A stretch of DNA of 34,361 bases. Origin: Perkinsus chesapeaki ATCC PRA-425. Its lineage: Eukaryota; Protista; Perkinsozoa. The translations under genes were made by a program, and so were the position numbers. The notes beneath the pieces are model-generated. The model was not told the origin of the DNA. It made no database searches and was given only the letters and a program-made list of their open reading frames with translations. Where the stretch lies: assembly GCA_013115145.1 (NCBI GenBank), contig JAAPAO010000382.1, positions 1 through 34,361 on the forward strand. The letters run 5' to 3'. This document shows, piece after piece, positions 154 to 33,955 of the stretch. Positions within the stretch are counted from its first letter, which is position 1. Every line of letters begins with the position of its first letter.

Positions 154-2793
154 TCAATGAACAACATGACGTGCAATCTGAGCAAGAACGCCCGGAATGG
201 AATCAACGGCACGCCCTGCCTCGCTGCTTAAAGCCTTCAACTGACAATTTAATGTAAGCCAAACTAGTTATTATCTTAATTGCGGAGGCTTACTTCTGCT
301 CTGGTGCTAATTTCATCGTGAGCAATAAAGTCTTCCACTCTGTTGAGAAGGGCCTCTGCTTTTTCTGACTCTGGATTCTTATTGGCGGTCTCCAGGAATG
401 AAGAAAAGTCATCTCCGGTCGTGGCGGTGGCAAGGGATATTTCCTGAACCAAGCTCATTTGCGAGGGGTTTATTATTGATGCGCCCACTGACCTTATGAA
501 GCTTTTTCAAATCTTGCTGCATTTGATCCTTAAGGTCCTTGATTTTCGCATCATCCTTGGCATCCCTCTCCTTCTGGGTCTTCATCAGAGAGTTCAGTTC
601 ATCATCCTCGGGGCCGCCGATAGGGGCCTATCAAGAAACAGTTCCAGTGGAAAGCTACAACTAAAGCAAGAAGGCGGGGGACTGAACGACTATAGCAGGA
701 TGCTACATTTCACAGTATTCAACTATCTTACGTTCCTCAGTTTCTCGGCTTCTGCTTCCCACTTTCTGTCGAGTGCCTTGATAGCATCGGCTTCCCTTTG
801 CGGATCGTAGCTAGAGGCCTCCATGAAACTGCTTGTGCCGTCCTCTCCCTCTAATCTCGACTTCAGTGCATTGCTAGCTTCCAGCTGAAATGGCGCATCA
901 ACAGCGACATCAACTGGCAAATAGCACAACGTACGTCAGCCTTAGATTCGGCGATAAGGGAAGCACTAGACTCTTTCACCTTCTGCATCGATTCATTAAA
1001 TTCCTCTTTAAGCCGTGCGACATCTCTTTGTTCCTTCTTCATTTCGTCAGTTTCCTGAATAACAACAACAATCTAAACACGTTCAGGGTTGAAAATTAAC
1101 GTACGGCGAAGGTCACTGGTGACCACTCTAAGAAAGATTCAGTCTTTTGCTTGTTGCCTGTGTCTTCCTTGTTATCGTCCTTGTCGTCCTCCTCCTTGTC
1201 GTCATTTGTCTCCTCATTCTTGGGATCTTTCTCCTTTGTAGATTTGTCATTCTCCTNNNNNNNNNNNNNNNNNNNNNNNNNNNNNNNNNNNNNNNNNNNN
1301 NNNNNNNNNNNNNNNNNNNNNNNNNNNNNNNNNNNNNNNNNNNNNNNNNNNNNNNTTGAGGCTTGCCACGGGCTGCTTCTTCTTATCCTCAGTGTCATTC
1401 TCCTTGAGGCTTGCCACGGGCTGCTTCTTCTTATCCTCAGTGTCATTCTCCTTGAGGCTTGCCACGGGCTGCTTCTTATCCTCAGTGTCATTCTCCTTGA
1501 GGCTTGTCACGGGCTGCTTCGTCTCATCTTCGGCATTCTTCTTCTCCTCGGCCTTCTGTCCATTTTGAGGAATGTCAGGGAGGCCAGCTGCTTCTCTAGC
1601 TTTATTCAGCTTCGCCTTGAACCTGTATTTTCCACATCAATATTCACAGCTTCTTTACGCCGATGACTCACTGTTGAAGCCACACGCCGAATCGGGCCTT
1701 GGAGGCAGCAGCAATCCCTGTGCCAGACTCGACGCCGTTCTCAGTCTCAAGGAAAGAAAGTCCGGGCAGCACGTTTGAGGAGTCCATTCCGATCGGGTCG
1801 AGCAGAGGGCTGGACGCTACCGGCGGAGCGGCTGGGCTTATGTCACCGAGGTCGATCTTGGCATTAGCTTCTTTTTGCTTCTCCAGCTCGGCTTGCTCCG
1901 AGGCCAATAACTTCTTCTGGGCAGCTATATCAGCATCGAGCTTACTTATCTGGAATACGATATCTCATCGAGAGCGGTGTGTGGGCGGCGGCGATGTAAA
2001 CCTACCCCTTCCTGTGCCATACTCAGGCCTCTCTCTGCGGCATCGGTGTTAGCATCCTCTGCACTCATAGCATTGCCACCGTTGTCGAGGAAGTATCCAA
2101 TATCCTTAGCCTCGAGGAATGAAGAAGAAGATCTATCCTTCTTCTCTGTCTCGGAAGCAACACCTAGAGCAGGTTAAGGTATTGTAGAAATTGCGATCTT
2201 ACGATCAATGGCTTGCGAACTGTTGAGGAGCCTTTGTGCGAACTCCTTTGCCTTTTCAGCCGCCCTGCGTAGGGGAGCGAAGATATCCTGTCCGTCTTTG
2301 CCCTGCATGAAGCTGCTTAGTGGGGGAGGGGCTAAAACCGAGCATGGTGCCCATCTACATACGATATCCAACATTCATTGCTTCTTACTTGGTATATTTA
2401 TCTTCTCGGAGGCTATCTCTTTAAGATGAGCTTCAGTCTTTTCAAGAGCCCTGACAATACACTTATATACCCAAACGTCTCATTGCTCCTCACTGATCCT
2501 CAAAGTCTTCATTTTGCTTCAACAGTTCCAAATCCTTCTTCTGCTCTGCTGTGCCCTTATCGAGATCGCTGGTCAGAGCGCCAATTTGTTCGTGAACCTG
2601 GCGAGAGGAGGCTGGATTCCTCTGCCGCGAGGTGCCAATTCACCTCCTTGAGAAGCTCTTCTGATTTCTTCTTGCTAGCTTCTAGAATTCTATCGGCAAG
2701 TCCAGTCTTAGAGGAAACGGCCGCGTTGATTTCTGTGGCCAGCGCCAAAGGGACTGTAGAGGTGGTAACGATAAAAGTGATCAAGGTGCGCAT
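154..2793 (-). CDS. Secreted coiled-coil polyprotein B with six S-Phi-X-[E/Q] motifs and an internal tandem repeat (about 11 exons; spans an assembly gap)
   Basis: ATG 2793 begins a signal-peptide-like MRTLITFIVTTSTVPLALA. GT-AG splicing of introns that are mostly ~39-57 nt (one ~110 nt) joins the ORF-track fragments into one frame ending ...IARHVVH-TGA (154-156). K/E/Q/A/L-rich helical segments are separated by SFMQ, SFLE, SFLE, SFLE, SFME and SFLE. The gene is an exon-for-exon paralog of the upstream gene. Confidence 0.8.
1257..1355. other. Assembly gap (99 N) inside a coding tandem-repeat array
   Basis: Run of Ns. Both flanks match the repeat unit (gtcattctcct on the left, ttgaggc on the right), so the array is probably collapsed. 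Confidence 0.9.
1356..1520 (-). repeat. Coding minisatellite, 48-nt unit (SLKENDTEDKKKQPVA) with one 45-nt variant; at least 3.5 copies
   Basis: Units at 1356-1403, 1404-1451, 1452-1496 (45 nt) and a partial unit at 1497-1520. They are contiguous, have no spacers and are in frame in gene B. Confidence 0.95.
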
Positions 2794-2952
2794 TGCTTGT
2801 TATCAGAGTAATTGGGGGTAATAGCTGCCACCATTCGATACCCTAACTCTTATTGACAACATAAAGCCTATACATGTTGACTATTTAACACCCTTTGGTG
2901 GCATGTAAATGCACATCGGTGCTGTTACTGCCTATACCGGTGATCATGACGA

Positions 2953-5900
2953 CTAGGAGGAATACTCCTGACTCAGCTTCTTAGCCAGGGCATCCAGCTG
3001 CGCCATAGCCATTGTTAAGTTCTTTGGGAGGGTTACCTGTAACAGCTGCATCCTATTCGTATTCTCTTCTACAACAGCAATTACCTGTCGGTGAGCCACC
3101 TGAATGAGGGAGCCCGGTTGTTGACCACCAGTGGTCTTCATCTCATCCTCAATCTCTCTCTGTTCCTCCCTATTCCTGGCCATATCAGCATCGAGCTCTG
3201 CCTTCAGCTTTTCTAGTTGGGAATGAGCTCGTGATTGTGAGCCTATCTCCAAAAAGGAGGAGGCTCCAATGTCAGTGTCTTTAGCCTTCGCCATCTTGTT
3301 CTCCTGTAGGATATCCTGACACAAGAACCCGCTATTCCCACGCTTCTATGGGGCTGATGAGCGTCCTCACAGATTTTAGTGAGACCAACGCCTTCTCCAA
3401 CTCTTCGTCGACAGCTTTAGCATGCTCTTCCGCCTTGGTCTTCTCCTTTTCAATGGCCTCCAGTTTGGCATCGCTGGTGGCCGGGACTTGATCGACAGGA
3501 GCAGCCTAAAACCAGAACACGGTATTCTAAATACGATCGTTCCCCACCGTACCGAAATCTTTTTAGCCTCCGCATCCCACTTAGCATGTAGGGATCGAAC
3601 CTCTTCATTCGCCTTCTCCAGATTGAAGTGCATCGGTTGAGTTTGTTCAACAAATGAAGGGCCAGCGGCAGCAGTAGCATTGCCCTGACATTTTGCCCTC
3701 ATACATCAGCCATTTCATTTATACATCAATCTTATTTCCCACCTGAGGTGCTTCAGTCTGGTTTATCTTTTGAGCGCTCTTGAGCATTTTGATTAGCTCC
3801 CTGGTCTTCTCTGCCTCTTTATGTATAGCATTACGTACATCCTCTACACTCTAAGACACAACACACCCATCCTACAACGCTGTCCTACTCCGATTGGGCT
3901 TACCATCGAGTTTTCTAGGAAAGAGGAGGAGCTTGACTCGTCATCATCTTCCTCATCGGGCTTCTTAGACTTTGTACTGCGTGCAGCCAATACACGTTGG
4001 TGGTCCTCCTGCATATACCTCTCAAGCCTAAAATACAGCGCAAGTCTCTCCCTCAGCCTCTCTGCCTCAGCAACAACAACAACAACGCCACTCACTCGCT
4101 AACCCAATCCCCTTGCTCTTTGGTCTTATCTCCTATTTGCAAGAATGAGGCGCCGCTGCCCTCGTCCTCGTCATCATCATTCCCCCTCCTGGCAGTGAAG
4201 CGTAGTCGTCCATGCTGCCCACCATGGGAGTCCCGCGCTAGCAGACTCCTCCACTCAGCTGCTTGCTCCTCAAGACTGAAGACAGGATCCCTACTATGCT
4301 CCTTCACAATCGGTTTAGCCTACTCAGTCTCCCAATCGCGCTTCTTAGCAGCCTCCTCCACCAAGGAGAGGCCCTCTATGCTTCCATCGGCAAGGTTATG
4401 CACCTTGGGCCGCTTGCTGGACTGCTTATCCTGGCGCTCCTCAATAGCCAACTGCCTAGCTTCATCTCGTACACTTCGTTCTAGTTGGTTAAGCTAACAA
4501 ATAGCAGTGAAACGTTATTAACAGTCATGCTGCCATACTGCATCATTGGCCTTTGTAAGATGCTTCTCTGTCCTCTCCTCATCGACGCTCTCTGCCTTCA
4601 TAGCGCTGGCGAACTCGTTATCTTCATTGTCGACAACTGTCCCAGCCTTCTCTTGAATTAATGAGAACCCACTTGTTGATGGTGTGGTGGTTACTGAAAT
4701 GTCACCAGCTTGATCACCAGATGCACCATAAAGCCCTACTTTTCCCTTCAGCCGCCGCATCCAATTCTTCTTGTTCTTTCTTCATCTCATCAGCAAAGCT
4801 CTGAGCCTTTCGTGCTACATTCCTCAATGGTTCGAGGAAATCAGGTATGTTGCCCTCCATGAAGCTGGAGGCCAGTGAAGATGGAGTAGTGGCTGTTGTG
4901 GTATCATTGCTTAGACCTGCTCAAATACCCACCACTTACTTGGGTCCTCCATCGCCTTGGCCTCCAGCGCCTCGTATCGTTTCTCGTCAGCCTCCAGTTT
5001 CCTAACATAACGTCCATACCAAGGAGGTACCAAGATGTAAGATTCTTTACTTGTTATCGTCGGCCTTCTGCTTCTCTAGTTTAGCAATCCCTTGTTGCTC
5101 ATCCGCTTGAGTCTTCTCCATCTGGACGTTGAGGCTCTTCATTTGCTGATGCACCTATCGCAAAAGTTATCCAGTTCGCCCTCATGGGCATGAACTCACC
5201 TTGTGGAGGATCTCATCGGTTTTCTGCCGGCTGCTTTCGAATGCCTTCTGCGCTTCAGCCTCAGTCATATGCCCCTCAGCATGGCTTACTACTCCTCCCG
5301 ACAGCTGCAGGAGAGAGCTCGGCCGAGCACGAGATGCAATAGAATCAATGTCATCCTTAATGTTAACGAAGGAAGTTGTCTCTCCCTGATATGCATGTCC
5401 ACCAAGGTAACGCTTGTCGATCCAACCTTGAGGCAGTTAGCCTTCTCTGCACAGGCCAAAAGATTCTTCTTCACCACATCCAAGCCCATAAGCTTATCTG
5501 TACACTTCTGGGCATCAGTCTTATCCTTGCGAGCGGAGTTGATCTCGAGGCAGGAGAACACCGCGTTGCACTCGGGGTCTGAGATTAACACCGCCACCAT
5601 CCCAGTGTGTAACATAATAAATGGTGGGGTGTTAACTTACTTTCATCACAAGAATAGAGCTCCGCTGCGCAGTGATCTTTGAGGCATGATGGTACCATAG
5701 ATTGGATAGACAACTTAGCCTTCTCTAAAGGCATGTTATTAACGAGAGAGACATCCTGTACAACGGCATCATCAGACGGTATGTCTTTAGTGGCGGCGAG
5801 CTCAGCCGGGTCTTGCCTGATCAAGTGGTTGCCGAGGTGGAGGCCGTGACTTATATCGTCTTACTTAACAACTCGTTCACAGCCAAAGTCTTGAGCACAT

Positions 5901-6420
5901 TTGAGCAGGGAACCCTCGGTAGGGCTCTCCTCGGCCGCTGTGATACCTTCAAGGGAGGCATGATAGATACGGTAGCTGTACACATCAGCTAACCATCAGT
6001 GCAGATGTCTGCTCCCCTCTCTCTTCTGGCAGCTCGAGCAAAGTTAAGGGCCTTGGATGCAGTAGGTGAGAGCTGAGTAGGGAGAGGCAACAGTAATCTT
6101 ACCGGAAAACAGTTCTACGAATCTATGATCCGCCTACCTTGTTGGGTATGTGATCCTTCTTTTCTAAACTCTCCTCGTTCTGCTCCTCATGCCATAGGCA
6201 GAGCAACATTACTCCACACTGAGACTGTTGTACTCCCTTCTTGTCCCTAAGAGATGACCATAAGCTGCCTCCTTCTCGAGGACGCTAGTTTGTGTACTTG
6301 TTAAACTCGGGATCAAGACTGGTATCAGCCTCCATAAGGCAGGTATTGAGAGCAGTGCTGCAGTGTTGTTCCATACACTGAACTCCAAAGTAGCGGCCAC
6401 CTCCAGCGGCTAACTCTGCA
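2953..6420 (-). CDS. Coiled-coil polyprotein A: two 8-Cys domains followed by helical modules split by nine S-Phi-X-[E/Q] motifs (5' end unresolved, upstream of 6420)
   Basis: About 16 canonical GT-AG introns keep one frame open from ...VAELAAGGGRYFGVQCMEQHC to ...KKLSQEYSS-TAG (2953-2955). Motifs are SLLQ, SFME, SLIQ, SLVE, SFLQ, SFLE, SFVE, SFLE and SLIQ. Candidate starts are ATG 6566 (tag|ctATG) or a signal-like exon MQHVLLTSTIYLYTALA at 6971-6921 followed by GTAAG. I could not link either start unambiguously. Confidence 0.75.
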
Positions 6421-6971
6421 ACCTGACCAGAGTGAGCTCTAAAATGAGGGCTATGTTCCTATATTACGGAAGCGGAGGGCCAAGGGACTAGTTCAGCGGC
6501 GTTGAGTGCCTGAGGGGGACAAGGACTGACCGATCGCAGGGAAACGGGGCGCTCGAGGTGCCACATAGCTATTGGGGAATACGGCTTAATCGATGATGAT
6601 TACCATCTTTCCTTTTCGTAATGACGTGGTCGGTTGTGGATTAACCTGAAGTAAGATACCTTGGAACGCACTAGCCATCAGGGACTATTCAGAGCAAGGA
6701 GGCCGATATGCCATGTTTAACGAGGACGCCGCTAACCCGAGGTACTCAAATAATATTATTATACTTTCGTTGGCTATTTAAGTACGTTCCTGAAGGCTTA
6801 GGCGACGATTACTCTACAGCAGTCCACCAGACCAAGACTATATTCCACGGTATGATGAGGAATGACGGTATGGCTGGTGAAGCAGATAAGACCCTATCCC
6901 ATGGGACCCTCCAGTCTTACCGCTAGTGCTGTGTAGAGGTATATAGTGCTGGTCAGTAAGACGTGCTGCAT

Positions 6972-7229
6972 AGTTAAGTAACAGTAATCGGGTAATAGCT
7001 ACGAAAAAGCACACTAACCTAAATAGATTTAACCAACCCGGCGATCAGAGGAAGATGCGCTGACGAAGTCACGCGCCATAAAATTACGCGCACGCCCAAT
7101 AATGAATAATTCTGCGCTGCTGGTTGTATCACCGCACTAAACCTACGTGTAGAGTAACGTGATTATCGTTAGGACAATAGTTAGGTAAAGTGACGTGGTG
7201 GTAGTTGTTGACTGCTGGCCATCTTCTAT
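6972..7229. promoter_or_regulatory. Divergent strand-switch region / candidate bidirectional promoter
   Basis: Non-coding stretch between the minus-strand block and PEX19. It contains CGCG-rich words (acgcgcc 7071, cgcgcacgccc 7087) in AT-rich sequence. Confidence 0.45.
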
Positions 7230-18245: not shown

Positions 18246-21200
18246 TTACTGCTGTCCCTTTGTGTAAAGGTCATAGTAAACCCCACCACGGGACATAAGT
18301 TCATTATGGGACCCTTGCTCTACCAGACGACCATCTGCTATAACTAGGATCACATCACTTCGTCTTATGGTAGATAGCCTATATCAGAGAGAGGGACTCC
18401 AACATTGCATTGTTAATTAGGATACCTGTGTGCAATAGTGAAGGTAGTCCTTCCGACGGCCGCAGTCTCCAGTGCATCTTGGACAACCTTTTCACTTGCA
18501 GAATCCAGGGCAGACGTTGCCTCATCGAGGAACATAACCTAAAATGGCAACTAGGCCTTCAGAGACAGGAGGGCGATGGCATAACGCTACCGATGGATCT
18601 CGGACTAGAGCCCTCCCAATGGCTGTTCTCTGCTTCTGGCCACCTGATAACCGTGAGCCACGAGGGCCAAGACCATCGTTCAAGCTGAACGGCCCGCCCA
18701 ATGGTGCTGCGAAATCCATCTTGGCCATTCTAGCCACTCGAACAAGGTCTTCGTCAGATGCTTCAGCCTTGCCGTATCTAACAATGTCAGATTACGGTCG
18801 TTCGTCGAAGCTGTCTCGCCTCAGGTTCTCAGCCAGAGTCATATCAAAGAGCACCGGCTCTTGGCTCACCAGACCACAATGTCCTCTCCACCAGGCGATA
18901 TTAAGCATACGACAGTCGGTACCACCGATGGCTACACTCCCTTCTGAGGGATCATAAAACCTCTGTAGAAGTGCTATAACTGTTGACTTCCCACCACCAG
19001 AAGGCCCTACCAAAGCTACCTGCTGCCCAGCTTGAACCCTAAATGATAGCCCCTTTAGGATAGCAACATCCGGTCGGGTAGGATATTGAAAGTATACGGA
19101 TTTAAACTCAATAGAGCCATCGCCCATCTCTTCAACTACACCTGTGGGATGTACCGCATTGATCTTGCTCTCGGTGTCCAGTATCTCTAATACGTCATGA
19201 GCCGCTACCTTAGCATCGTCCAAGTCAGGCACGAATGCCAAAGCATTGCCAACACCAATAGATCCCAACATAACAGCCATAAGTGACTGCAACATATCTC
19301 TAAAGCTCGCTCCTTCCTCCTGGATGAGATAGCCTCCATAGTAGAAGCCGGCTGCATAAGCCAAGAACATCATGCTTGTTGAGGTACCGTAGGCAAGCCC
19401 AGTCATAATAGCACCACGTTGGGCACTGGAGACAGTGCGGTTGATGTAACCTGTGTACATATCGATAGTCCATGCTTCTGCTATAAATGCACGAACAGTT
19501 CGCATGTTTTGGACTGCCTCTGATGCCGTTTGGGAAGCTTGCTTGAGGAGATCCTCGTCCACTTGCGTGCCCAGCCACCACATAGCAGAACGAATTTTCC
19601 AGGCAAATACTAGTAACGGCAAAATACAAGTCATAACCAGACCAAGCTGCCAGACACCAAAGAGAGATATTATAACTCCACCTATAAAGCCCGCGAAGGC
19701 CTCTATGTAGTTACCCAGAGCCTGCCCAGTGATGGCCTTCATCTTCAGCGCGTGCGTCGACAAAGCAGCAGTGAGCTTTCCGGGTGCATGGGACGGGTCA
19801 TCGAAGTAGCCAACGTCCTGCTCTAGTAGCTTATGAAAACATTGCTTTCTCACATTATAGGTGAAATACTCTCCTATAAAGCTGAAGAAGTAGAACATAA
19901 TAGAACAACTGAAGAATACACCAATGGCCAAGCCTATATACTTAATAGCAGTTTCCTCGACAGCATCCATCATAGCATCCTTATCGGGATAATAGAAGGC
20001 GTCAATAACTTGAGACACTATCAGGGCGTGGAGGGGCATTCCTAAGCCCTTACCAGTTGCACCGATAATAGCAGGAATGTAGTAATACAGCTCACCACGG
20101 CTGAATTGGAATAGACGACGGTAAGGCACTTTGTATGACTTAGCCACCTGCGCCAATAATTCAAAGTTGAGAATGTGGATAAGAGTATCTCACCTGCTTC
20201 TTCCTAGCCTTCTCTATAGCCACCTCATCGACACCTAGATCGATTGAAATGCCTTTGGTGTCAATCTCTGTAATTGTGCCATGATTCGACGATTCTCTGA
20301 CTGTCATTTCTGGAGTAGCTAATCTAGTTAAGTCAATCTCCCCAACGGAAGTTGGTGCAACCAGTGTATGATGGGCATCATGAGATAAGGCAGCCTCTTG
20401 AGCTGATACCTGAGATTGGTCATCGACCTATACAAGTAAATTTGCCTTTATACTTACCAGTGCGCAGTATTCTCCTTCATTCTGCATTAGGGTCTTATGA
20501 GATCCGGACTCAACGATCTGACCTCGTTTCATCACAAATATATTATCAGAATTTCTAATAGTAGATAACCTATGTGCTATTGATATAGTAGTTATATTAT
20601 AATGTGATTGTAAATGATCAATTGTCTTTTGTACCATTTTTTCACTTTCATTATCTAATGCTGATGTAGCCTCATCAAGTAATAATATTTGTGGACGTCT
20701 TAATAATGCACGAGCTATAGCTATCCTTTGTTTCTGACCACCAGATATCGTACTCCCACCAGCACCACAATAGGTATTAAATCCCTCAGGCAAGGAGTTA
20801 ATGAAGTCCAAAACCTGGGCACGTCGACAGGCGTCTATCAATGCCTTCTCATCTGGCACTTTAGACCCCGATAAACCATAAGTAAGGTTATTTCTGATAG
20901 ATGTAGCAAAAAGAAAAGGCTCCTGACCGACATAGCCATAAACAGCGCGAAGACCATACACTGGCATCTCCCGAATGTCGGCACCATTGATTAGCACAGC
21001 ACCTGATGTAGGATCATAGAACCTTTCAAGCAGCTGTACAGAGGTTGATTTGCCAGAGCCGGATTCACCAACAAAGGCGACCTTCTCGCCTGCTTTAATA
21101 GTGAAAGAGATATCACTGAGAACCTCGACCTCCGGCCTAGCAGGGTATCGAAAGCTCACGTTTCGGAAAGCAATTGATGAGATAGTTGGAGGTTTTGGGA

Positions 21201-22413
21201 CGGCTGGCGGAGCCGCGGAGGCAGTGGGCTCAATGCGAGTAGGGTCGGTTGAAACCTACAATAAGATTCGGGTAACACACTGCGAGGCCATACAAGTACT
21301 CACCTTGAGTAGAGGGAAAATCTTGGCACCAGCCGTCTTACCCTCGACAAAAAATGATATATTAGGGGCTATCTGGCTTAGACCGAATGTCGCCATAATA
21401 CAGGCGAAGTACACGGTCATGATATCACCACCATTATAGGGATCACCAGTAGAAGGGTTTGTGGTACCCTCGTAGATGAGGCGTCCACCAAACCAGAATA
21501 CCAAAGAGTATGTTAGGAAGATACAAAAGAAGACTAGACCGGTCATAACACCGCTTTGGAAGCCTGCCTTTATCTCTCCATCTCGTGCAGATGTTAGCTT
21601 TGAGCAATATCTACCGGTCTCACGCTTTTCCGCGCCGAAGGACACCACCGTTTTGATGGCCGATAGAACCTGAATGTAGCAGAAAGATCAAACGTGCTGA
21701 TTTCGAGAAAGACTGCCGACCTCTTCAGCTACAGCCCCAGCCTCTGCGTAGAAGTCTTGAGCCCTCCCTGTCTTCCTGGCGATCCTTTTAGACAATACAC
21801 CAATGGATGCCGTTATAAGAGGCATAGTTGACATCATAACAAGAGCGAGTTGCCATCCACGATACAGGCCAACGCCGTATCCGAAGGCAAATTGACAGAA
21901 ATTGGCCACGGTAAGACCAACTCTGTATCCTATAGCTTCTTGAACCTTGAAGACATCCTCCGTCATCCGTGTCGGTAAAGCCGCTGGGGTCTCTCTATCA
22001 AACCAGGCAATATCCTGGCTCAAAACAGAACGGAAGTACTCTATTCTAATACGTGTGGCGATGGTATTCGATGAATAGGTGAAAATCGAATCCCAGATGA
22101 ACGAAGATAAGAAAGCGACAGCAGCAACCACAACTAGTTGTAGCGACACTGTCTCCACTTGACTCAGAAGTTGACTAACATCCCCCGTAGCAGAGCTTTG
22201 GCCAACATCATTCATGAACTCGCCTAGGAAGAGGGCAAAGGTGGGGAAAGCAGCACCATTAACTATAGCAGCAAGGAGGCCAACGGCCAACCAGGCTACA
22301 TCTTTTCTCGAAGCGAGACTGAACAGTGTAAAAAACGACACTGTTCTAGGGCGATATTCATCTGCAGAACTTTCTCCGGAAGATGATCCTCTTCCTTTGC
22401 AACAAAGCTTCAT
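18246..22413 (-). CDS. ABCB (MDR/P-glycoprotein) full transporter, copy 1 (TMD-NBD-TMD-NBD)
   Basis: Walker A GESGSGKS and GPSGGGKS; signatures ISGGQKQ and LSGGQKQ; Walker [12 protein letters not shown] and [11 protein letters not shown]; H-loops. Starts MKLCCKG and ends [13 protein letters not shown]. About 7 GT-AG introns. Confidence 0.95.
20530..20777. repeat. 248-bp block identical to 25225-25472 (NBD1 signature to H-loop), ~32% GC
   Basis: Base-by-base comparison shows no mismatch over 248 nt. My hand count is 79 G+C of 248. The flanks are diverged between the paralogs. Confidence 0.95.
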
Positions 22414-22905
22414 AATAAGGTTTCAAAATTATTAACTGCTAATGTGTAATATAAGTAACACGAGGCTTGGCGCTAGTGACATTCAATGAGGGTAGTTCAA
22501 TTACGAATGCGAATAAGTACCATGCAGCAGTGAATACCAATGCGCTTACACCGACAATACTGTTTCAGCAAGCCTAAACGCAATAAGCAGAGAGGTTACT
22601 TTCTCTATGTATATGAGCTAACAACATTGACATACCACTACAATCAACACACAGATAAGGAGAAACTAGACACGACACCGACACATCACAGTAACATAAT
22701 GGGGGACGGTGAATCCCCTGCAACGGTTCATAGACCACATTCATATCTAATAGTATATACAAGCCAATTGGAGACTCCAATCGGCCAATCACTAAATGCT
22801 GCAGTATCTAGGGCTTGAACCAAGCCCTCGGGGTAGTGAGTGAACGACAGGGGTTATAGAGGGTTCTCGTATAGGGGACACTGTCCCCGGGACAGGGAGC
22901 TGAGA

Positions 22906-25900
22906 TTATCGTTGACCTTTGGTGTAGAGATCGTAGTATACTCCCCTCCTAGTCATGAGCTCATCGTGAGTACCGCGCTCAACTAGCTGGCCATCAGAAA
23001 TCACTAGGATGACATCGCTATCCTGGACAGTCGATAATCTGAGAACGATCCAAACTTTCTTTCCAATAAATGCCATTGATAAATTTACTTACCGGTGGGC
23101 GACAGTGAACGTGGTTCTGCCAACCGCTGCTGTGTCAAGGGCCTCTCGAACTATATGTTCACTAGCCGAGTCTAGTGCCGAGGTTGCCTCATCAAGGAAC
23201 ATCACCTGATAAAAGAATCGCTGCGCCGCGGTGTTTGAGGTCTAGCGGTACCTTGGGATCCCTGAGAAGAGCGCGGCCAATGGCTGTTCTCTGCTTCTGT
23301 CCGCCAGATAGTCGCATTCCTTTAGGCCCCAAGCTGTCATCCCACTTAACTGGGCCTCCAAGAGCTTCACAGAAATCCATCTTAGACATCTTCGCTACCT
23401 TTACCATCTGGTCCATAGAAGCATCGACACAGCCGTACCTGAGCCAGAGCTGAGCGAGTGAGGCGTGAGAGCCTGTTGCTCCCACCTAAGATTGTCTCCC
23501 AGAGTCATGTCAAACAAGACAGGCTCTTGAGCTACTTGACCACATTGTGCACGCCACCATTGGATGTTCAGCAGTCTGAGATCGTCACCACCAATGCATA
23601 CGCTACCAGTATTCGGGTCATAATACCGCTGGAGGAGGCCAAGCACTGTTGACTTACCTCCACCAGAGGGACCAACTAGAGCTACCTGCTGCCCGGCATC
23701 TACCTTAAACGACAGACCCTTGAGAATCTCCACCTCTGGCCGTGTAGGATAAGCAAAGTGCACCGATTTGAACTCTATAGAGCCATCGCCGAGAGTAGTA
23801 ACCGTTCCATCGGGATGAACAGCGTTGATCTTGCTCTCCGTGTCCAGCAGCTCGAAGACATCATGCACTGCGACCTTAGCATCGTCAATATCTGGAAGAT
23901 ATGCCATGGCTTGACCAACACTCATCGCTGATAACATTATTGACATCAAAGATTGAATCATCTGTTGATACCCTAAACCAGCATGGACCATCAAGTGACC
24001 ACCGTAATAGAAGCCTGCTGCATAGGCTAAGTACATAACACAGTTGGATAGACCATAGGTTGCACCAGTTACGATTGAACTGGTCCTGGTATTAGTGAGG
24101 GTGCGCAAGACATAGCCTTTGTAATATTCAACACTCCAGTGTTCAGCCATGAAGGCCCGAACTGTTCTCATATTCTGCAATGCCTCTGAAGCCACCAACG
24201 ACGCTTGCTTCATGATATCATCGTTTTCAGCTCCGAAGTTGCTAGTAGCACTGGCTCTCAGTTTTTGGGCTAGAACCATTATGGGCAGCATGCACATGCA
24301 AACCAAGGCCAGCTTCCACGATCCACAAAGGGAGATGATGATACCACCAATAAGACCGCCAAGAGATTCTGCATAGGTTCGTAATGCAGGGCCTGTCAGT
24401 GCCTTCATCTTAACAGCGTAGGTCGAAAGGGAAGTAGTTAACTTCCCACGTGCATGGCTCGGGTCATCAAAGAAGCCTGCATCTTGCTCTAGGAACTTAT
24501 CAAAGCAAAAACGTCTAACGTTAAAGGTGAAGTACTCTCCGATGTTTTGAAAGCAATAACTAGTGAGTAGGGAAGCCAAGAACACACCACAGGCCAGACC
24601 AATATATTTCTCTGATGCAGCATCGACAGAGTTCATCATGCTTGTCTTGTTGGGGTCATAAAAAGCAGCTACTGCATGGGACAGGATCAAAGCATGCATG
24701 GGCATAGCAATACCGCGCCCCGCAGCGCCAATGAAGGCCGGAGGGTACCACCATTTCCTGTCTTGGCTGAACACGAAGAGCCTTCTCCACGGGACACGAT
24801 AGCTTTTAGAGACCTGAAACAGCGACCTATCTGGACGGAAAAGGATGCCAATGCTTCCCACTTGTTTCTTCCTCGCCTTCTCCTTGGCGACCTCGTCCTC
24901 TCCAAGATCAACTTGAGCGTGTGAGGATGCCACTGACAGAGCACGTTGCACTCTCGCCGAATCATCTTGTGTTTTAGACAGCGAAGAAGTCATTGTCTTG
25001 GACATTGAGGCCGAGATCGTGTTTTTGCCAACAGCTACTGGTAAGCCCTCATCCGCAAGATGGCCCGTATCTGCTGCTTGCTGAGCGGCCTGTTGGGCTG
25101 ACACCTAAAGCGATCGCAATGCTTTGTAAACTATAGTGAAAAAGTCACTCACCAGTGAAGAGTAGACACCTTGCTTTGCCATCAGCTCCTCGTGGGTTCC
25201 AGATTCTACGAGATTGCCTTCTTGCATCACAAATATATTATCAGAATTTCTAATAGTAGATAACCTATGTGCTATTGATATAGTAGTTATATTATAATGT
25301 GATTGTAAATGATCAATTGTCTTTTGTACCATTTTTTCACTTTCATTATCTAATGCTGATGTAGCCTCATCAAGTAATAATATTTGTGGACGTCTTAATA
25401 ATGCACGAGCTATAGCTATCCTTTGTTTCTGACCACCAGATATCGTACTCCCACCAGCACCACAATAGGTATCCAAGCCACTTGGTAGTCCACTGATAAA
25501 GTCGTAGATCTGAGCCTTCTTGCATGCATCAATGAGCTCATCATCCTTTGGTATTTGATTCCCTACTAGGCCATAGGTGAGGTTATTACGAATGCTTGTG
25601 GCAAACATGAAGGGCTCCTGACCAACGTAACCATATATTGAACGAAGAGTGTGAATCGGCATGTCCCTAGTATCCTCGCCATTTACGAGGAAAGCGCCCG
25701 AATCAGGATCATAGTAGCGTTCGAGCAGCTGCGCAGTTGTGGACTTTCCTGAACCGGACTCGCCCACGAATGCCACCTTCTGCCCAGCTTCTATAACGAA
25801 ACTGACTCCCTTCAACACTTTAGTTTCGGGTCGTGCAGGATAGGTGAATTGCACGTCTTGAAACTCGAGGGATTGAAGCTTGAAGGTCGAGTCGAACCTA

Positions 25901-27034
25901 GGTGGTCCGGTCACGGGAGGTTCGATATGCTTCCCACCAGTTCGTTGTTGCTCAAGCAGTGGGAATATCTTAGACCCAGCTGCCTTGCCCTCGGCGAAAT
26001 ACTCAATATTAGGAGCTAGCTGGCCTAGCGAAAAAGTGGCCATAATGCAGGCAAAGAACACAGTGAGAATGTCGCCACCAGTATATACAAGACCTGTTGA
26101 TGGATTGATTGTATTATTATAGATAAGAGTACCACCGTACCAGAACGTTAAGGCATATGTACCAAAGATACAAAAGAAGACAACACCGATCATGAACCCA
26201 ATAGATACACCGGCTTTGATGCCACCGTCACGAGCCAGAACTAGTTGATCATCATATCGCTTGCTCTCCCGCTTCTCAGCACCGAATGCCTGTACAGTCC
26301 TAATGGAAGTTAACACCTGAACAACTGGGTAACACAGTGAAAGGGATATTAATGCTCACCTCCTCAGCTATAGCCCCAGCTTTGGCGTACAGTGTCTGAG
26401 ACTTCGACGTCTTCTTAGCAAGGTCCCTGCCCAATAGAGCTGTCGATACCATTATTAATGGCATAGTTGATAGCATTACGAGAGCTATCTGCCAACCACG
26501 AAAGAACCCCAGAATGTAGCCAAATACAAACTGAGATACGTTAACGATCGCCAGACCTGCTCTGTAACCGATGGCATCTTGGACCTTCATAACATCCTCG
26601 GTCATACGAGAAGGGAGCGCCGCTGGAGTTCGGACATCGAACCATGCGATGTCCTGTCCAACAATGGCTCTAAAATACTCAATACGGACCTTGGCTCCAA
26701 TAGTTTCCGAGCAGTAGGTAAAAGCACTGTTCCAGATACTACTAGTGACGAATGCTACAGCAGCAACGATACAGAGCTCCCATGCGACCTTAGTCACTGC
26801 ATCCATCAAACCCGCTACACCATCGACCATTGACTGTCCGGCGGTATTAAGGAAGTTACCGTAGAAATAGGCGAAGCCCGGTGGTACCGCCCCATTGATT
26901 ATGGCAGTAATCACGCCAATAGTGAGAACCACTTTATCCGTTCGTGTGGAGTAACTGTATAAGGTAAAATAAGGGACAGAATCGATCTCTTCTGGATCAA
27001 GATTCCTCCGACGGGACTTTAAAGTGAGCTTCAT
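22906..27034 (-). CDS. ABCB (MDR/P-glycoprotein) full transporter, copy 2, tandem paralog
   Basis: Same motif set and mostly the same intron positions as copy 1. The start [16 protein letters not shown] (27034) parallels copy 1. Ends [13 protein letters not shown]. Contains an in-frame 48-nt intron at 24814-24861. Confidence 0.95.
25225..25472. repeat. Second copy of the 248-bp identical AT-rich block
   Basis: Identical to 20530-20777 and encodes the same NBD1 segment. Confidence 0.95.
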
Positions 27035-27172
27035 ATATAACAGTACAGAGCATAACCTACGACAAGAACCCTGCGATGAGTACACTCCAGTGCCCGCCAA
27101 GCTGCTGACCGTTAAATCTCAACAAGTTATATTAATACATGATACTAATTAATTATTCAACTGTTATCCCTG

Positions 27173-28351: not shown

Positions 28352-31300
28352 CTAGTAGGCCTCAGTAGAGTATCTCTTATTGCCCTTGATGTCGTCCTCA
28401 AACCATTTTTCCACTTGCTCATCAGTCATCTTTCCTACCTTACCGACCGAGCTCTTAACTGCAGCTTCAACATCAGGTACAGCAATAGAGGGCCCACAGA
28501 AGAAGAAGTAACCACCAAGCTTATGAATATACTTATACAACAGCTCTGGATTCTCAGCCATCTTATGTTGTACAAATATCATATGATCCTGGTCATGAGA
28601 GAAAGCATTAATAACCTTAGTCAACACACCAGCTTCCATGAACTGCTTCCACTCTTCTCTATATAAGAATTCCTCCTTCTCATGACGGCAACCATAGAAG
28701 ACTATCATAGGACCAGTATCCATACCAAGGACCTTGCGCTTATACATTCTATCTTGTACAAACGCACGCATAGGAGCAATACCAGTACCAAGGGCAGCCA
28801 TAACCATTGGAGTACGCTCATCCTCAGGGAATACGAACGTACCACTAGCAACAGATACACAGACTTCAGTATCGTTGCTGAAGCCTAGATACTTAGTACT
28901 AGCTCCTGTGATAAGCTTACCATCAGAATTAGTCCATCTATTGATAACAACAGTAAGCTCCACAATACCAGGAGAGTAGAATGAGCTATTTGCAATAGAA
29001 TAAAGCCTGGGCTTGAGTAGTGGAATAGTCTCCAGGAAGTTGACCAGGGTCATAGACTTGGTGGACTTGGGGAACATCTTCAATATATCAGCATAAGACA
29101 CACTCTTACCAAGTAAGGCCTTGAACTTACCGTCGTCGTTAGCTATTCCAACCAACTTCTTAGACTCTGCCTCATCCGAACTGATTCGGGCCAGCTGCTT
29201 GTAGAAGCTTCTGGCAGGCTTACCGAAGATATCCAACAGCTCAGTGAAAATCTGCCTAGTAGGCATACGAGCCGTGAAAGCTGACCTCAAGCGAGCCGGG
29301 ACATCATCAGAGAGGCATTTAACCGAAACCACATCGTTACGGTCAAGCTGAGTTATGGTCTCATCGAATAGCTTGTCCACATCCTCCTTGAGATTCTGCG
29401 GGTATAGGGTAATAGCATCACCAAGCCTGAAGGGGAGATCTTCCTTGCTGACATCTAGCACAATATGACGGATATCTCTCTCATACTGCACTGGAGTCAT
29501 ACGACGGTTATCCACCACTGGTACGGCATGTGATCCAGGCGGCACAATACGCTGATATGGCAGCTTCTTCTCAGTGGCTGATAAAGGTAGAGTAGTGACC
29601 TCGAACAATGCCTCGTACTCTTCTTCATCCTCTGACTTAGCTCCAACCTCTTCACATAACCTAGGCAACCACTGGTCAAATGCAGTGGCCCAACCATCTT
29701 CAGCACGATCATCACCCTTGGCGATATCGATGACCCTCGTTACACCAAGCTCTGCCATACGATTGTCGATCTTAACAGCAGCCTCGCAGAACTTCTCATA
29801 AGAGCTGTCACCCATGCCAAACATACAGAATCTTCCACCAAGAACCTTCTTCTCATGGATAGCAGCCATCTGCTCCCACAATGCCTCGGCGGCTGAAGGC
29901 ATGTCACCATCACCACAAGTAGATGTCATAAGTATAATAAGATCCTCGGACTGGGTTGCATCCTCAAGGGCTAGCTCGTCCATACCAGTGCAAGCATTTA
30001 CGCTGACACCCCGGCGCTTTAGTATGCCGGACAAACGCTTAGCCAACTGCTCAGTGGTACCAGTATCCGATCCATAAAAAATACGTACACCAGCCGAAAG
30101 GCCAGATGTTAGAGTATCAGCCGAGTGCACCTTCTCAGCAGCGATCTCCTTTAGTTTTTTATGACGTTGCTCTACATAGTGCTTGAGCTCTGTCTGAAGT
30201 TCTTCAGCATGCTGAGGCATTCGACGAACCAACTGCTCATATCGGTTCTGATTCTTCAAGAACTGCACCAATACCTCGGGCTTGATATTTTTACAATCCA
30301 GCTGGAAAGGGTTCTTACCCGACCTAGCCAGCGATGGATCGTAACGATATAATGGATAGTAACCGGACTCCACGGCAGCCTTTTGGTCTTCAGACATTCT
30401 GGTTAAGCCAGTTTTGGTCCTATGTTCTATACAAGGGGCGTAACAAAGGACGAGCGATGGGCCTGGATGCTTCTCGGCCTCATGGAACGCTCGAACAGTC
30501 TGGGAATAGTTAGCGCCCATAGAACAGGATGCTACATATACATTGGGATAAGCCATCGCCAACTGGCCCAAGTCCTTCTTCTGCAAGGCACGACCGTTCT
30601 GCATAAACTTCGCTACAGCTCCCATTGGGGTAGCCTTCGAACCCTGACCACCAGTGTTCGAATAGACTTCTGTATCCAATACAACGATATTAACATTTTC
30701 ACCAAGTGCCAAGACATGATCAATACCACCATAACCGATATCATTAGCCCAACCATCACCACCAAGCATCCACATAGATGTCTTAACAAAGAGATCGGAA
30801 AGCCTTTTGCATTCCTCAAGGCAATGAGGCAACACCCTCATACCTTTCATAGTCTCTATAGCTCTCTCACCATACTGAGAAGATGCCTCAGGATGATCGG
30901 CATTATCAAGCCATTGTTGTAGCATCAGCCTTAGCTCACCAGTCACTGCAGTCTCATCAGATAATGCTTCTTCAACTCTCAGACGTAACTGCTGACGTCT
31001 GTGATTCATGGTCACAGCCATACCCATACCATACTCGGCATTGTCTTCGAATAACGAGTTACCCCAGGCCGGACCCTTACCAGTCTTTTTATCAACAGTA
31101 TAGGGTATCCAACCGGCGGTAGCCCCCCAAATAGAGCTGCAGCCAGTGGCATTGGCAATAACCATTCGTTTGCCAAACATCTGTGTCAATAGCTTGGCAT
31201 AAGGGGTTTCACCACAGCCTTCACAGGCTCCGGAGAACTCTAGCAACGGCTGCTGGAACTGCGAACCCTTGAGAGTGTGAGCGTCAAAGCGATCACCACG

Positions 31301-33955
31301 AGACTCCAACGTCATAGCATAGTCCCAGTTGTTCTTATGGCCTTCTTCTAGTGCATCAGGCAAAGGCTTCATCATCAAAGCGTTATCAGGGCAAGCATTT
31401 ACACATACCTCACAGCCAGTGCAATCCAATGGGGAAGCTTGGATACGGAATGCCAGACCAGATACCTGGTTACCACCAGTGGCAGGTTTGGTCAAGAACG
31501 TCTCTGGGGTATCTTCAGAGGCTAACTCTTGAGGGGAGGCCAGGAATGGTCTGATTACACCATGGGGGCATATAGCTGAGCATTTGTTGCATTGAGTACA
31601 CTTATCCATATCCACCACAGGAATAGCCTGGGCTACACCACGCTTACCCCACTGTGTCATACCAAGTTGCACTGTACCACCTGGTTGAAAGGCTGATACC
31701 GTCAAGGAGTCACCAAGACGTGTATGAATCTTATCCAATACATCACGAACAAAGGCCGGCTCCTCGCCTGTTCGAGGCTTGCTCTGATCCAAACGTTGGC
31801 ATTTCATCCATGAGCTATGAGGAACTTCAATCTTATGAAGATTATCAATAGCATATCCAACAGCTAAGATATTCTTCCTAACAATATCAGCTCCCTTGTT
31901 CTTATAGGTCTTCTCTATGGCTGCTTCAAACAGCGGTAAAGCTTGCTCGTAAGGCAAAACGCCAGATAGACGGAAGAACACCGCTTGCATAATGTTGTTA
32001 ATAAGCCTACCCATACCAGACTCCTTAGCAACTAATGATGCATTTATAACGAACAGCTTCAGCCGCTTTTCGGCAACCATAAGCTTGAACTTTGGTGGAA
32101 GTTGTTCGTCAAGGTCTTCAATAGTAATCCATGGAGCATTAAGGACTAGAATGCTTTCTGGTTTACAAGCACCGAGCAAAAGGGTGGCATCAAAAGCATT
32201 AACATACTCCTTCTTATGAATGGCAACATACTCACAACCACTGGCTATCTCATAAGGAGAATCTATGGGCTTAGGACCAAATCTTAGATGTGACACTGTA
32301 ACACCACCAGCCTTCAATGCATCGTATGCAAAGAAGCCTTGAGCGTAGAGGTCAGTGTTGTCGGCAATAATCTTAATAGCATTCTTATTAGCACCCACAG
32401 TGCCATCCGAGCCAAATCCCCAGAACATACACTGAGTGGTGGCAGGATTCGACACATTAATCTCATCAGTAACAGGCAAGGATATGTTATTAACGTCATC
32501 ATCAATTCCAACGGTAAAGGGCGACTTGGGAACGCGGGCGTCAACTAGATTCCTGACAGCTGCCAATACTTGACCAGGAGTAAAATTCTTGGACGCCAAA
32601 CCAAATCGGCCACCAATAACCTGAAAGAATGAATAAGGTGAAGACAAACCAGCAGACCAACTCACCAGAATATCCGGGCGTTTGGACTTCTGAATGCTCG
32701 CGCACACATCCACATAGAGAGGCTCGCCGATAGCACCGGCTTCCTTACAATGGTCCAACACACATATGCGTTGTACAGTGGCAGGCAGAGCATTCAAGAA
32801 ATGGGGGACAGACCAGGGTCTCAACAGCCTTACTCGGACCAATCCTAGCTTGTAACGAGGATAACGCTTCTCGAGATAGGTAATGGTCTCGGCAACGGTA
32901 GAAGATCCGGCTCCCATAGCCACAAAGACATGGGTAGCATTCGGATCACCTTCATAGTCGAACAGATGATACTCCCGACCAGTAAGGGCCTTTATCATAT
33001 CCAAGGCACCAGCCAAATGCTCCGGAACAGCATCATAATAAGGGTTAGCAGCCTCTACGTTTTGGAAGTAGATATCAGGCGACTGTGCTGTTCCGCGCAA
33101 AGTGGGATGGTTAGGGTTGAGGGCCCGAGAACGATGCTTGTCGATCTCCTTAGACATTATCTGTGCTACCAGCTTCATCTGCTCAGCCGTGAGGTCGTTG
33201 ATCTTCTGAATCTCATGGGACGTTCTAAAACCGTCGAAAAAGTGAATGAAAGGCACCGATGACTTCAATGTCGCAATATGTGCAGCTAGGGCCATATCCA
33301 TGCACTCTTGAACCGAGTTAGCACATAACAGTGCCCAACCAGTCTGGCGCACGGCCATGATGTCCGAATGGTCACCAAAAATTGACAGTGCTTGACCAGC
33401 AATGGCTCGAGCTGGGACGTGAAAGACACATGGGATAAGCTCCCCTGCTATTTTGTAGAGGTTAGGAATCATAAGGAGGAGACCTTGTGATGCTGTAAAG
33501 GTGGAAGACATACCACCTACTGCTAAAGATCCATGTACAGCACCTGCTGCACCTCCTTCACTTTGCATCTGTCTAACAACTGTACACTGACCGAAAGCAT
33601 TCTTAACTCCAGAGGCAGACCATTGATCACAGTTCTCACCAAGAGGGGTTGATGGTGTTATAGGATAAATGAATGCCGAATCAGATAGATGGTAAGCAAC
33701 GAATGATGCTGCGCTGGCACCATCATAGGGCTTCATACCAGTATTGCGAGCAGCTTCCAGCCTGGCTAGAATCTTCGGATCTTCCTGAGAGGCCCGCTGG
33801 ACAGGTGGGCCCAGCTTTTCGCCACCTGCCTTGGGTTTACTGGTAACAAAAGCATAGGTCAGTGCACTGACAGCGGCCAAGGCGGCGGCACCACCAGCGA
33901 GAGCCAAGGGAGTAAGAACGGGAACCCCTTGGTCCTCGGAGTCCTTAGAGGGCAT
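28352..33955 (-). CDS. PNO: Pyruvate:NADP+ oxidoreductase (PFO fused to a cytochrome P450 reductase-like flavodoxin/FAD/NADPH module)
   Basis: PFO motifs YPITPS and MQSEGGAAGAVHG; two ferredoxin motifs (CTQCNKCSAICP, CTGCEVCVNACP); GACEGCGE, GGDGWA..DIG and APCI; flavodoxin FYGSDTGTTE and FGMGDSSYEKFC; FNR motifs PRLYSI, GTGIAPMR and FYGCR. A single 45-nt in-frame intron (32621-32665) restores ILVIGGRFGLASK. Confidence 0.97.
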   Translation of the reverse strand: MPSKDSEDQGVPVLTPLALAGGAAALAAVSALTYAFVTSKPKAGGEKLGPPVQRASQEDPKILARLEAARNTGMKPYDGASAASFVAYHLSDSAFIYPITPSTPLGENCDQWSASGVKNAFGQCTVVRQMQSEGGAAGAVHGSLAVGGMSSTFTASQGLLLMIPNLYKIAGELIPCVFHVPARAIAGQALSIFGDHSDIMAVRQTGWALLCANSVQECMDMALAAHIATLKSSVPFIHFFDGFRTSHEIQKINDLTAEQMKLVAQIMSKEIDKHRSRALNPNHPTLRGTAQSPDIYFQNVEAANPYYDAVPEHLAGALDMIKALTGREYHLFDYEGDPNATHVFVAMGAGSSTVAETITYLEKRYPRYKLGLVRVRLLRPWSVPHFLNALPATVQRICVLDHCKEAGAIGEPLYVDVCASIQKSKRPDILVSWSAGLSSPYSFFQVIGGRFGLASKNFTPGQVLAAVRNLVDARVPKSPFTVGIDDDVNNISLPVTDEINVSNPATTQCMFWGFGSDGTVGANKNAIKIIADNTDLYAQGFFAYDALKAGGVTVSHLRFGPKPIDSPYEIASGCEYVAIHKKEYVNAFDATLLLGACKPESILVLNAPWITIEDLDEQLPPKFKLMVAEKRLKLFVINASLVAKESGMGRLINNIMQAVFFRLSGVLPYEQALPLFEAAIEKTYKNKGADIVRKNILAVGYAIDNLHKIEVPHSSWMKCQRLDQSKPRTGEEPAFVRDVLDKIHTRLGDSLTVSAFQPGGTVQLGMTQWGKRGVAQAIPVVDMDKCTQCNKCSAICPHGVIRPFLASPQELASEDTPETFLTKPATGGNQVSGLAFRIQASPLDCTGCEVCVNACPDNALMMKPLPDALEEGHKNNWDYAMTLESRGDRFDAHTLKGSQFQQPLLEFSGACEGCGETPYAKLLTQMFGKRMVIANATGCSSIWGATAGWIPYTVDKKTGKGPAWGNSLFEDNAEYGMGMAVTMNHRRQQLRLRVEEALSDETAVTGELRLMLQQWLDNADHPEASSQYGERAIETMKGMRVLPHCLEECKRLSDLFVKTSMWMLGGDGWANDIGYGGIDHVLALGENVNIVVLDTEVYSNTGGQGSKATPMGAVAKFMQNGRALQKKDLGQLAMAYPNVYVASCSMGANYSQTVRAFHEAEKHPGPSLVLCYAPCIEHRTKTGLTRMSEDQKAAVESGYYPLYRYDPSLARSGKNPFQLDCKNIKPEVLVQFLKNQNRYEQLVRRMPQHAEELQTELKHYVEQRHKKLKEIAAEKVHSADTLTSGLSAGVRIFYGSDTGTTEQLAKRLSGILKRRGVSVNACTGMDELALEDATQSEDLIILMTSTCGDGDMPSAAEALWEQMAAIHEKKVLGGRFCMFGMGDSSYEKFCEAAVKIDNRMAELGVTRVIDIAKGDDRAEDGWATAFDQWLPRLCEEVGAKSEDEEEYEALFEVTTLPLSATEKKLPYQRIVPPGSHAVPVVDNRRMTPVQYERDIRHIVLDVSKEDLPFRLGDAITLYPQNLKEDVDKLFDETITQLDRNDVVSVKCLSDDVPARLRSAFTARMPTRQIFTELLDIFGKPARSFYKQLARISSDEAESKKLVGIANDDGKFKALLGKSVSYADILKMFPKSTKSMTLVNFLETIPLLKPRLYSIANSSFYSPGIVELTVVINRWTNSDGKLITGASTKYLGFSNDTEVCVSVASGTFVFPEDERTPMVMAALGTGIAPMRAFVQDRMYKRKVLGMDTGPMIVFYGCRHEKEEFLYREEWKQFMEAGVLTKVINAFSHDQDHMIFVQHKMAENPELLYKYIHKLGGYFFFCGPSIAVPDVEAAVKSSVGKVGKMTDEQVEKWFEDDIKGNKRYSTEAY

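Follow-up and report, generated by a model that had tools for sequence, protein, structure and literature searches.

Tandem genes of Perkinsus encoding putative secretory proproteins with arrays of plasmepsin IX/X-like tetrapeptides

The maturation of rhoptry and microneme proteins at SFhE-type sites is carried out by proteases that are now targeted by antimalarial drug research and are counted among the invasion machinery of apicomplexans. Could proteins of an organism outside Apicomplexa carry whole arrays of such sites, and if so, what might the arrays be for? This question is raised by two adjacent genes, here called A and B, which occupy positions 155-6971 on the minus strand of a 34,361-bp contig of Perkinsus chesapeaki; the whole contig is the window analyzed here. 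The product of A is present in the public databases: phmmer, queried with the final exon of A, recovered an 872-aa match of 100% identity (KAF4661331.1, hypothetical protein FOL47_006742), and this record confirms the host outside Apicomplexa that had been surmised in a first-pass annotation of the DNA. That annotation had read both genes as encoding polyproteins diced at 15 tetrapeptides into helical peptides of an apical secretory organelle. The structural part of this reading stands, namely the tandem paralogues, their signal-peptide-like starts, the helices and linkers with a constrained tetrapeptide, and the match to sites of plasmepsin IX (PMIX) and plasmepsin X (PMX) and of Toxoplasma ROP1 and ROP13; the cleavage, the class of the protease and the organelle are what we infer from it. 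The best explanation for the observations given below is that A and B are members of a Perkinsus-specific proprotein family, which probably enters the endoplasmic reticulum and thence the secretory pathway.

A tetrapeptide array in a family of tandem genes

The protein encoded by A begins with a signal-peptide-like exon, continues with an N-terminal region containing 16 cysteines and ends in nine linker-plus-helix modules. In the protein encoded by B a signal-peptide-like start is followed at once by helix-linker modules, and the Cys-rich region is absent. When counted with the pattern S-[FL]-[LIVM]-[EQ] the tetrapeptide occurs nine times in A and six times in B, and all 15 copies are in frame in the spliced gene models at the places noted in the first pass (Table 1). 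The counts expected from composition are 0.26 for A and 0.19 for B, and neither observed count was reached in any of 20,000 composition-preserving shuffles, so that the motif is commoner than in shuffled sequence. As a control, the eleven other open reading frames (ORFs) of at least 200 aa in the window contain a single copy in 5,977 aa. The codons vary between the motif sites, which indicates that the constraint acts on the protein and not on a DNA repeat.

The two genes are paralogues, in keeping with their initial description as a tandem pair. They match each other in blastp (E=2.6e-15, 27% identity), they share intron positions, their exon lengths and phases agree (e.g. 104-nt and 62-nt exons in each), and all six B motifs align to motifs of A. 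Full-length searches recovered relatives in Perkinsus only. In P. olseni a single public gene model (KAF4669442.1, 1,384 aa) fuses the orthologues of A and B, with the signal-peptide exon of B skipped and the B part at approximately residues 884-1384, which shows that the A-B tandem order is conserved. P. marinus has PMAR003575, the orthologue of A, and a second protein of 600 aa; the gene directly downstream of the A orthologue encodes a hydrophobic N-terminus and five motifs at B-like positions. A more distant pair of proteins comprises P. olseni KAF4702409.1 with 15 motifs and P. chesapeaki FOL47_005687 with nine, and the P. chesapeaki gene downstream of the latter encodes a further family member with four motifs. 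Since the downstream neighbors in both P. marinus and P. chesapeaki are also members, the family consists of two conserved tandem pairs per genome and, judging by these sequences, both pairs predate the split of the three Perkinsus species.

Searches for homologues outside Perkinsus found none, either by phmmer against 1.84 billion representatives or by two word-indexed methods. One of the latter, a profile search with seven family sequences, detected no member outside Perkinsus among the 8,000 best word-sharing candidates, a scope within which distant relatives may be missed. Two other phmmer matches were set aside as coiled-coil noise, both being long repetitive proteins with many matched stretches, and one of them a bacterial type IX secretion system (T9SS) protein cluster. 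Pfam searches with single exons and whole proteins yielded no family above threshold and only a weak match to violaxanthin de-epoxidase (VDE), to which we return below.

Within the family the tetrapeptide is strongly constrained. P. olseni and P. marinus retain all nine A sites, in which position 2 varies only between F and L, position 3 among L, I, V and M, and position 4 between E and Q; the B sites are likewise present in both species. The eight family sequences together contain 69 instances, with F in 47, L at position 3 in 43 and E in 45 of them, SFLE being the commonest form. Small and acidic residues lie on either side of these instances, and positions -8 to -1 are mostly D, S, G, A or P, as the first-pass mention of a Ser/Gly/Pro/acidic stretch ahead of the motifs had suggested. 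In a four-sequence alignment the mean pairwise identity is 0.80 in the motif columns, as against 0.42 in the other linker columns and 0.67 in the helices, and gaps fall mostly in the linkers.

The AlphaFold2 model of KAF4661331.1 contains ten helices alternating with coil. The helical modules thought to follow the motifs are thus recognizable as helices separated by motif-bearing linkers, with predicted helix lengths of 18-73 residues rather than the approximately 40-90 originally given. Nine linkers have one motif each, placed 8-23 residues ahead of the next helix, and one short linker has none. Every motif lies in a non-helical linker of low pLDDT (predicted local distance difference test score) that is predicted to be disordered in this low-confidence model, a placement that would leave the sites exposed before any cut. 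A hydrophobic periodicity of 3.5 residues was detected in seven of the ten helices (p<0.05 versus shuffles), and most helices have a period of 3.5-3.6 residues.

Two further features bear on the compartment and on the role of the motifs. Firstly, a hydrophobic N-terminus is present in all eight family members, with values of 1.7-2.6 in a 10-residue Kyte-Doolittle window, a measure of hydropathy rather than the output of a dedicated predictor. For B such a start had been expected, and it was found, at 2793 and not at the ATG near 2374. Secondly, all 16 Cys lie within a single conserved domain of otherwise Cys-free proteins, and their spacing is conserved in all Cys-bearing members and identical in both subfamilies. 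In the second subfamily (P0013 and P0014) there is a motif on each side of this domain, and in the P. marinus protein P0012 the first motif comes directly after the signal-peptide-like segment. Motifs that bracket the Cys-rich domain or directly follow the signal peptide have the layout expected of excision sites, and one site per linker combined with sites on both flanks of a folded domain is the layout of a polyprotein.

Proposed proteolytic maturation and its alternatives

We propose that the family undergoes proteolytic maturation along the following lines. An A-type member would comprise a signal peptide, the 16-Cys domain and a succession of amphipathic helices of acidic character, and a B-type member a signal peptide and helices only. 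The one S-[FL]-[LIVM]-[EQ] tetrapeptide in each flexible inter-module linker would serve as an endoproteolytic maturation site. The enzyme we envisage would belong to the pepsin family of aspartyl proteases, share the specificity of PMIX/PMX or of ASP3 from Toxoplasma, and work in a post-Golgi compartment. Dicing of A would release a Cys-rich piece of approximately 30 kDa, parted from the helical array by a cut at motif A1, together with about nine helical peptides of 4-12 kDa, and dicing of B about seven such peptides; a regulated secretory organelle might store or release them as its matrix or cargo. Computed cuts at the A motifs give one piece of 30 kDa with all 16 Cys and others of 3.8-11.5 kDa, with isoelectric points (pI) mostly of 4.5-5.3.

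The candidate protease class is suggested by known specificities. The substrate consensus of PMX is SFhE, with the cut after the P1 Phe, and that of PMIX is SFLE (PMC9804387); alanine replacement at any one of the four tetrapeptide positions affected cleavage (PMC7146544). The ASP3-linked sites of Toxoplasma ROP1 and ROP13 are of the S-Phi-X-E type (PMC5595437), and among the pepsin-like proteases of apicomplexans ASP3, PMIX and PMX constitute clade C (PMC8540915). In a position-by-position comparison with the PMIX/PMX consensus, the 15 sites of the window and the 69 of the family fit S-[FL]-[LIVM]-[EQ]. The Perkinsus proteins additionally resemble the PMIX/PMX/ASP3 substrates in the signal-peptide-like start, in the placement of the site within a flexible acidic or Ser-rich stretch, and, in the case of P0013 and P0014, in N-terminal pro-pieces ending in the motif; both groups of hosts are myzozoan alveolates. 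They differ in that Perkinsus is a perkinsozoan with 6-15 sites per protein, as opposed to one or a few, and in that the apicomplexan substrates are enzymes or adhesins, whereas the predicted Perkinsus products are short acidic helices without sequence homology to them. Another code, the PEXEL/TEXEL motif of plasmepsin V and ASP5 (R-x-L-x-E/Q/D), was considered and rejected: the Perkinsus sites have no Arg, and in at least 60 of the 69 the residue at -1 is one of S, A, L, V, P and Q.

To the cutting of the motifs by a PMIX/PMX/ASP3-like enzyme in the secretory pathway we assign approximately an even chance, as there are several points that count against it. Position 4 may be Q in Perkinsus, whereas the PMIX/PMX consensus has E. 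A study of ASP3 by terminal amine isotopic labeling of substrates (TAILS) reported no strict consensus among ASP3 sites (PMC5595437). The mean pLDDT of the AlphaFold2 model is 45, so that "linker" in part means "not confidently modeled", and the putative signal peptide of A has no more than moderate hydrophobicity as judged by hydropathy. The restriction of the family to Perkinsus deprives it of a functional anchor by homology. Literature searches combining Perkinsus with PMX/ASP3, or the motif with Perkinsus, Chromera or Colpodella, or using the accessions, returned nothing relevant. Finally, two small P. chesapeaki RNA data sets compared with positions 1520-7020 gave zero contigs, a result that is uninformative and no sign of silence. 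The weakest step of the scheme is the location in a rhoptry or extrusome, which is suggested by analogy and by weak language-model neighbors among ciliate clusters.

Alternatively, the tetrapeptide may be a short linear motif that is not cut at all, and that instead binds a sorting receptor or chaperone, forms a contact in self-assembly or is modified on its Ser, the proteins then being full-length modular components of the secretory pathway or the extracellular space. Conserved islands within disordered linkers are typical of any linear motif, and S-x-x-E fits a minimal pattern of acidophilic kinases. However, E and Q are swapped freely at orthologous sites, which speaks against a charge-dependent kinase motif, and the distribution of one copy per linker, on both sides of the Cys-rich domain and after the signal peptide, is that of a polyprotein, whereas sorting signals are usually single. 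We regard this explanation as rather unlikely.

The same structural and conservation evidence that points to a PMIX/PMX/ASP3-like enzyme would equally fit if an unrelated protease did the cutting (a subtilisin or papain-like cathepsin, for example, or some other enzyme directed at Glu/Gln), with the resemblance to PMIX/PMX being convergent or coincidental. Many secreted subtilisins and cathepsins are expressed by Perkinsus (PMC2868825), and a subset of the sites conforms to x-G-A-S-F, which is loosely of the subtilisin type at P4-P1. Against this, the G-A prefix is found in a minority of the 69 sites, no such specificity is documented for Perkinsus, and the four constrained positions coincide exactly with the SFhE/SFLE consensus. 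An unrelated enzyme appears somewhat less probable than an uncut linear motif.

A purely structural origin of the motif, as a helix N-capping box (S-x-x-E/Q) or as a packing element left from internal duplication of modules, would accord with the observation that the modules correspond roughly to one exon each, suggesting duplication, and in the classical capping box the N-cap residue is S and N3 is E/Q. Capping leaves the two hydrophobic positions unaccounted for, and conservation in the linkers is otherwise poor around the motifs, making this origin improbable. The capping box as such was rejected, since 8-23 residues separate the motifs from the predicted start of the helix and Gly/Ser-rich stretches often come after them. 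Least probable is that the family consists of coiled-coil proteins of the cytosol or cytoskeleton, with hydrophobic N-termini that are gene-prediction artefacts: exon 1 of A does lie 411 nt upstream without transcript support and the N-termini were judged by hydropathy, but eight members from three species and different annotation pipelines all have a hydrophobic start, and the 16 conserved Cys in one domain of otherwise Cys-free proteins point to an oxidizing compartment.

Ciliate precursors, other polyproteins and the possible origin of the code

Maturation by the proposed PMIX/PMX/ASP3-like route finds a parallel in ciliates. In Tetrahymena the maturation of granule-core proproteins requires the aspartyl cathepsin CTH3 (PMC4142616), and ciliate granule-core proproteins give rise to small acidic polypeptides (PMC2119969). 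The trichocyst matrix protein (TMP) precursors of Paramecium and the Grl proteins of Tetrahymena are secretory precursors of small acidic polypeptides, as is predicted for the Perkinsus family. A further TMP/Grl trait, acidic helical products with heptad-like periodicity, was recovered in A, in the acidic pI range and the seven periodic helices given above. Sequence homology to TMP/Grl was not found, with only Perkinsus proteins in phmmer and the two word-indexed searches and nothing in Pfam, and the Perkinsus precursors differ from those of ciliates in yielding many more predicted pieces. For three members (KAF4661331.1, KAF4669442.1 and P0014) the nearest named language-model neighbors are ciliate clusters of PF27870 ("T1-F"), whose share of the top 100 hits ranges from about one third to more than half, at scores of about 0.5 that are far below a level meaningful alone.

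The combination of a signal peptide with tandem modules parted by a short processing motif is also known from nematode polyprotein allergens and from fungal repeat proteins processed by Kex2. These polyproteins have dibasic furin/Kex2 sites and near-identical repeats, whereas the Perkinsus proteins have S-Phi-h-E/Q and diverged modules, with 27% identity between the paralogues.

For the Cys-rich domain the only Pfam lead was VDE (PF07137), profile positions 3-74 of which match A residues 206-277 with E=0.005 and 16.7 bits, below the cutoff of 25.7. This sub-threshold match recurs in the P. marinus orthologue and lies in the second half of the Cys-rich region. A score below the gathering threshold and a match restricted to those profile positions do not place A in PF07137, and the Perkinsus region further differs from violaxanthin de-epoxidase in lacking a lipocalin domain and in being duplicated within the 16-Cys region. 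A sequence search of the PDB with the Cys-rich region of A gave one chance match (E=1), and an AlphaFold2 model of this region built with five sequences has a pLDDT of 45, too poor for a meaningful fold comparison.

That secretory proproteins are matured at SFhE-type sites is known; what would be new, and seems plausible, is the multi-site helical polyprotein form outside Apicomplexa, and we found no earlier report of the family or of its motif array in the literature searched. As a tentative and rather doubtful extension, the S-F-h-E/Q code and its aspartyl protease pathway might go back to the ancestor shared by Perkinsozoa and Apicomplexa, with Perkinsus applying the code to an extent not known from apicomplexans and its polyproteins of 6-15 sites being diced for an organelle matrix or cargo. 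Were this so, the family would form a functional bridge between the extrusome matrix precursors of ciliates and the rhoptry proproteins of apicomplexans. Should a perkinsid, an important parasite of shellfish and only a remote relation of apicomplexans within the Myzozoa, use arrays of up to 15 such sites conserved between species, the recognition code would be older than Apicomplexa, and so, probably, would the pathway. How the biogenesis of apical organelles originated would then be directly testable in P. marinus, which is culturable and transfectable, the motif would provide a sequence handle for secretory-organelle cargo in perkinsids and perhaps in dinoflagellates, and the multi-site helical polyprotein would represent a new kind of substrate. 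If the sites are uncut, the family remains an unexplained and strongly constrained array of linear motifs.

Gene models, assembly gap and flanking genes

The splice models of A and B were built by hand from three-frame translations and lists of splice sites, and that of A was then checked against the public model. Both genes have many short GT-AG introns of 41-108 nt, apart from one of 411 nt, and 17 introns of A are identical in the public and hand-built models. Exon 1 of A (6971-6921) was taken from the public model, and the P. olseni orthologue has a similar start. An ATG at 6566 was rejected as the start of A, as P. olseni shares the signal-peptide exon annotated at 6971. The extent of 154-6420 given at first pass thus takes in both genes but falls short of the beginning of A. 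In the model of KAF4661331.1 position 4935 is joined to 4863 (acceptor 4865), giving the reading ..DPSKCFMEG, in which the Ser of motif A2 is lost. An alternative intron of 47 nt (4939-4893, acceptor 4893) yields ..DPTTTPSSLASSFMEG, with SSFMEG intact. We prefer acceptor 4893 to 4865, because SSFMEG agrees with the P. olseni and P. marinus orthologues and with the B copies, and because the 62-nt exon shared with B is preserved. An exon-level homology search with the exons of B returned no match.

Table 1. Positions of genes A and B, their motifs and other features in the window
Feature	Position	Strand	Basis and remarks
Gene A (KAF4661331.1 / FOL47_006742)	2953..6971	-	Own splice model and exon map of annotated protein; 21 exons, about 879 aa refined
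Gene A exon 1, signal-peptide-like hydrophobic N-terminus MQHVLLTSTIYLYTALA	6921..6971	-	Public model, hydropathy; 411-nt intron next
Cys-rich N-terminal region of A, residues about 45-272, 16 Cys	5427..6422	-	Cys positions, family alignment
Motif A1 SLLQ	5305..5316	-	Spliced model, in frame; SLLQLSGG invariant in four proteins
Motif A2 SFME	4855..4866	-	In frame with acceptor 4893; SSFME/Q-G kept in orthologues and gene B
Motif A3 SLIQ	4653..4664	-	Spliced model, in frame; kept in orthologues
Motif A4 SLVE	4356..4367	-	Spliced model, in frame; kept in orthologues
Motif A5 SFLQ	4137..4148	-	Spliced model, in frame; kept in orthologues
Motif A6 SFLE	3913..3924	-	Spliced model, in frame; kept in orthologues
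Motif A7 SFVE	3646..3657	-	Spliced model, in frame; kept in orthologues
Motif A8 SFLE	3247..3258	-	Spliced model, in frame; kept in orthologues
Motif A9 SLIQ	3100..3111	-	Spliced model, in frame; SLLE or SLIE in orthologues
Gene B	155..2793	-	Own splice model, P. olseni colinearity, P. marinus neighbor gene; 13 exons, at least 646 aa plus gap
Gene B signal-peptide-like start MRTLITFIVTTSTVPLALA	2737..2793	-	Splice model, hydropathy; P. marinus B orthologue begins alike
Motif B1 SFMQ	2303..2314	-	Spliced model, in frame; aligned with A2
Motif B2 SFLE	2111..2122	-	Spliced model, in frame; aligned with an A motif
Motif B3 SFLE	1746..1757	-	Spliced model, in frame; aligned with an A motif
Motif B4 SFLE	1126..1137	-	Spliced model, in frame; aligned with an A motif
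Motif B5 SFME	819..830	-	Spliced model, in frame; aligned with an A motif
Motif B6 SFLE	390..401	-	Spliced model, in frame; aligned with an A motif
Assembly gap 1257-1355 and abutting 48-nt tandem repeat 1356-1528 encoding KENDTEDKKKQPVASL units	1257..1528	-	Exon 7 of B

The tandem repeat next to the assembly gap in B has 3.7 copies with 92% matches, and its register is identical on either side of the gap. Compared with the P. olseni orthologue (KAF4669442.1 residues 884-1384), residues 16-312 of B are colinear at 64% identity and the part after the gap at 67%; as both flanks are colinear with this orthologue and in the same register, B can be regarded as a single gene with a single exon across the gap. 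Two codon bases precede the run of N and two follow it, and taken literally its 99 N would disrupt the frame. The frame is preserved by every gap length in keeping with the 48-nt register, the actual frame across the gap being unreadable, and the gap residues were represented by X in comparisons spanning it. The KENDTEDKKKQPVASL repeat was found in B of P. chesapeaki only, the P. olseni orthologue having a short non-repetitive stretch instead. Each repeat unit includes SLKE, which is motif-like except for the Lys at position 3.

An exact look-up of a neighboring ORF of the window gave no match. Two tandem sets of minus-strand ORFs at 18792-27100 are ATP-binding cassette (ABC) transporter-like, with Walker and signature motifs in their translations. 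The second tandem pair of the family (P. chesapeaki JAAPAO010000313.1, 1-18083) adjoins a gene with flavodoxin, FAD-binding and NAD-binding domains, and its locus and that of the window may be derived from a segmental duplication. In the window itself positions 28352-33955 constitute a long ORF, which from its appearance by eye we take to encode a fusion resembling pyruvate:NADP oxidoreductase.

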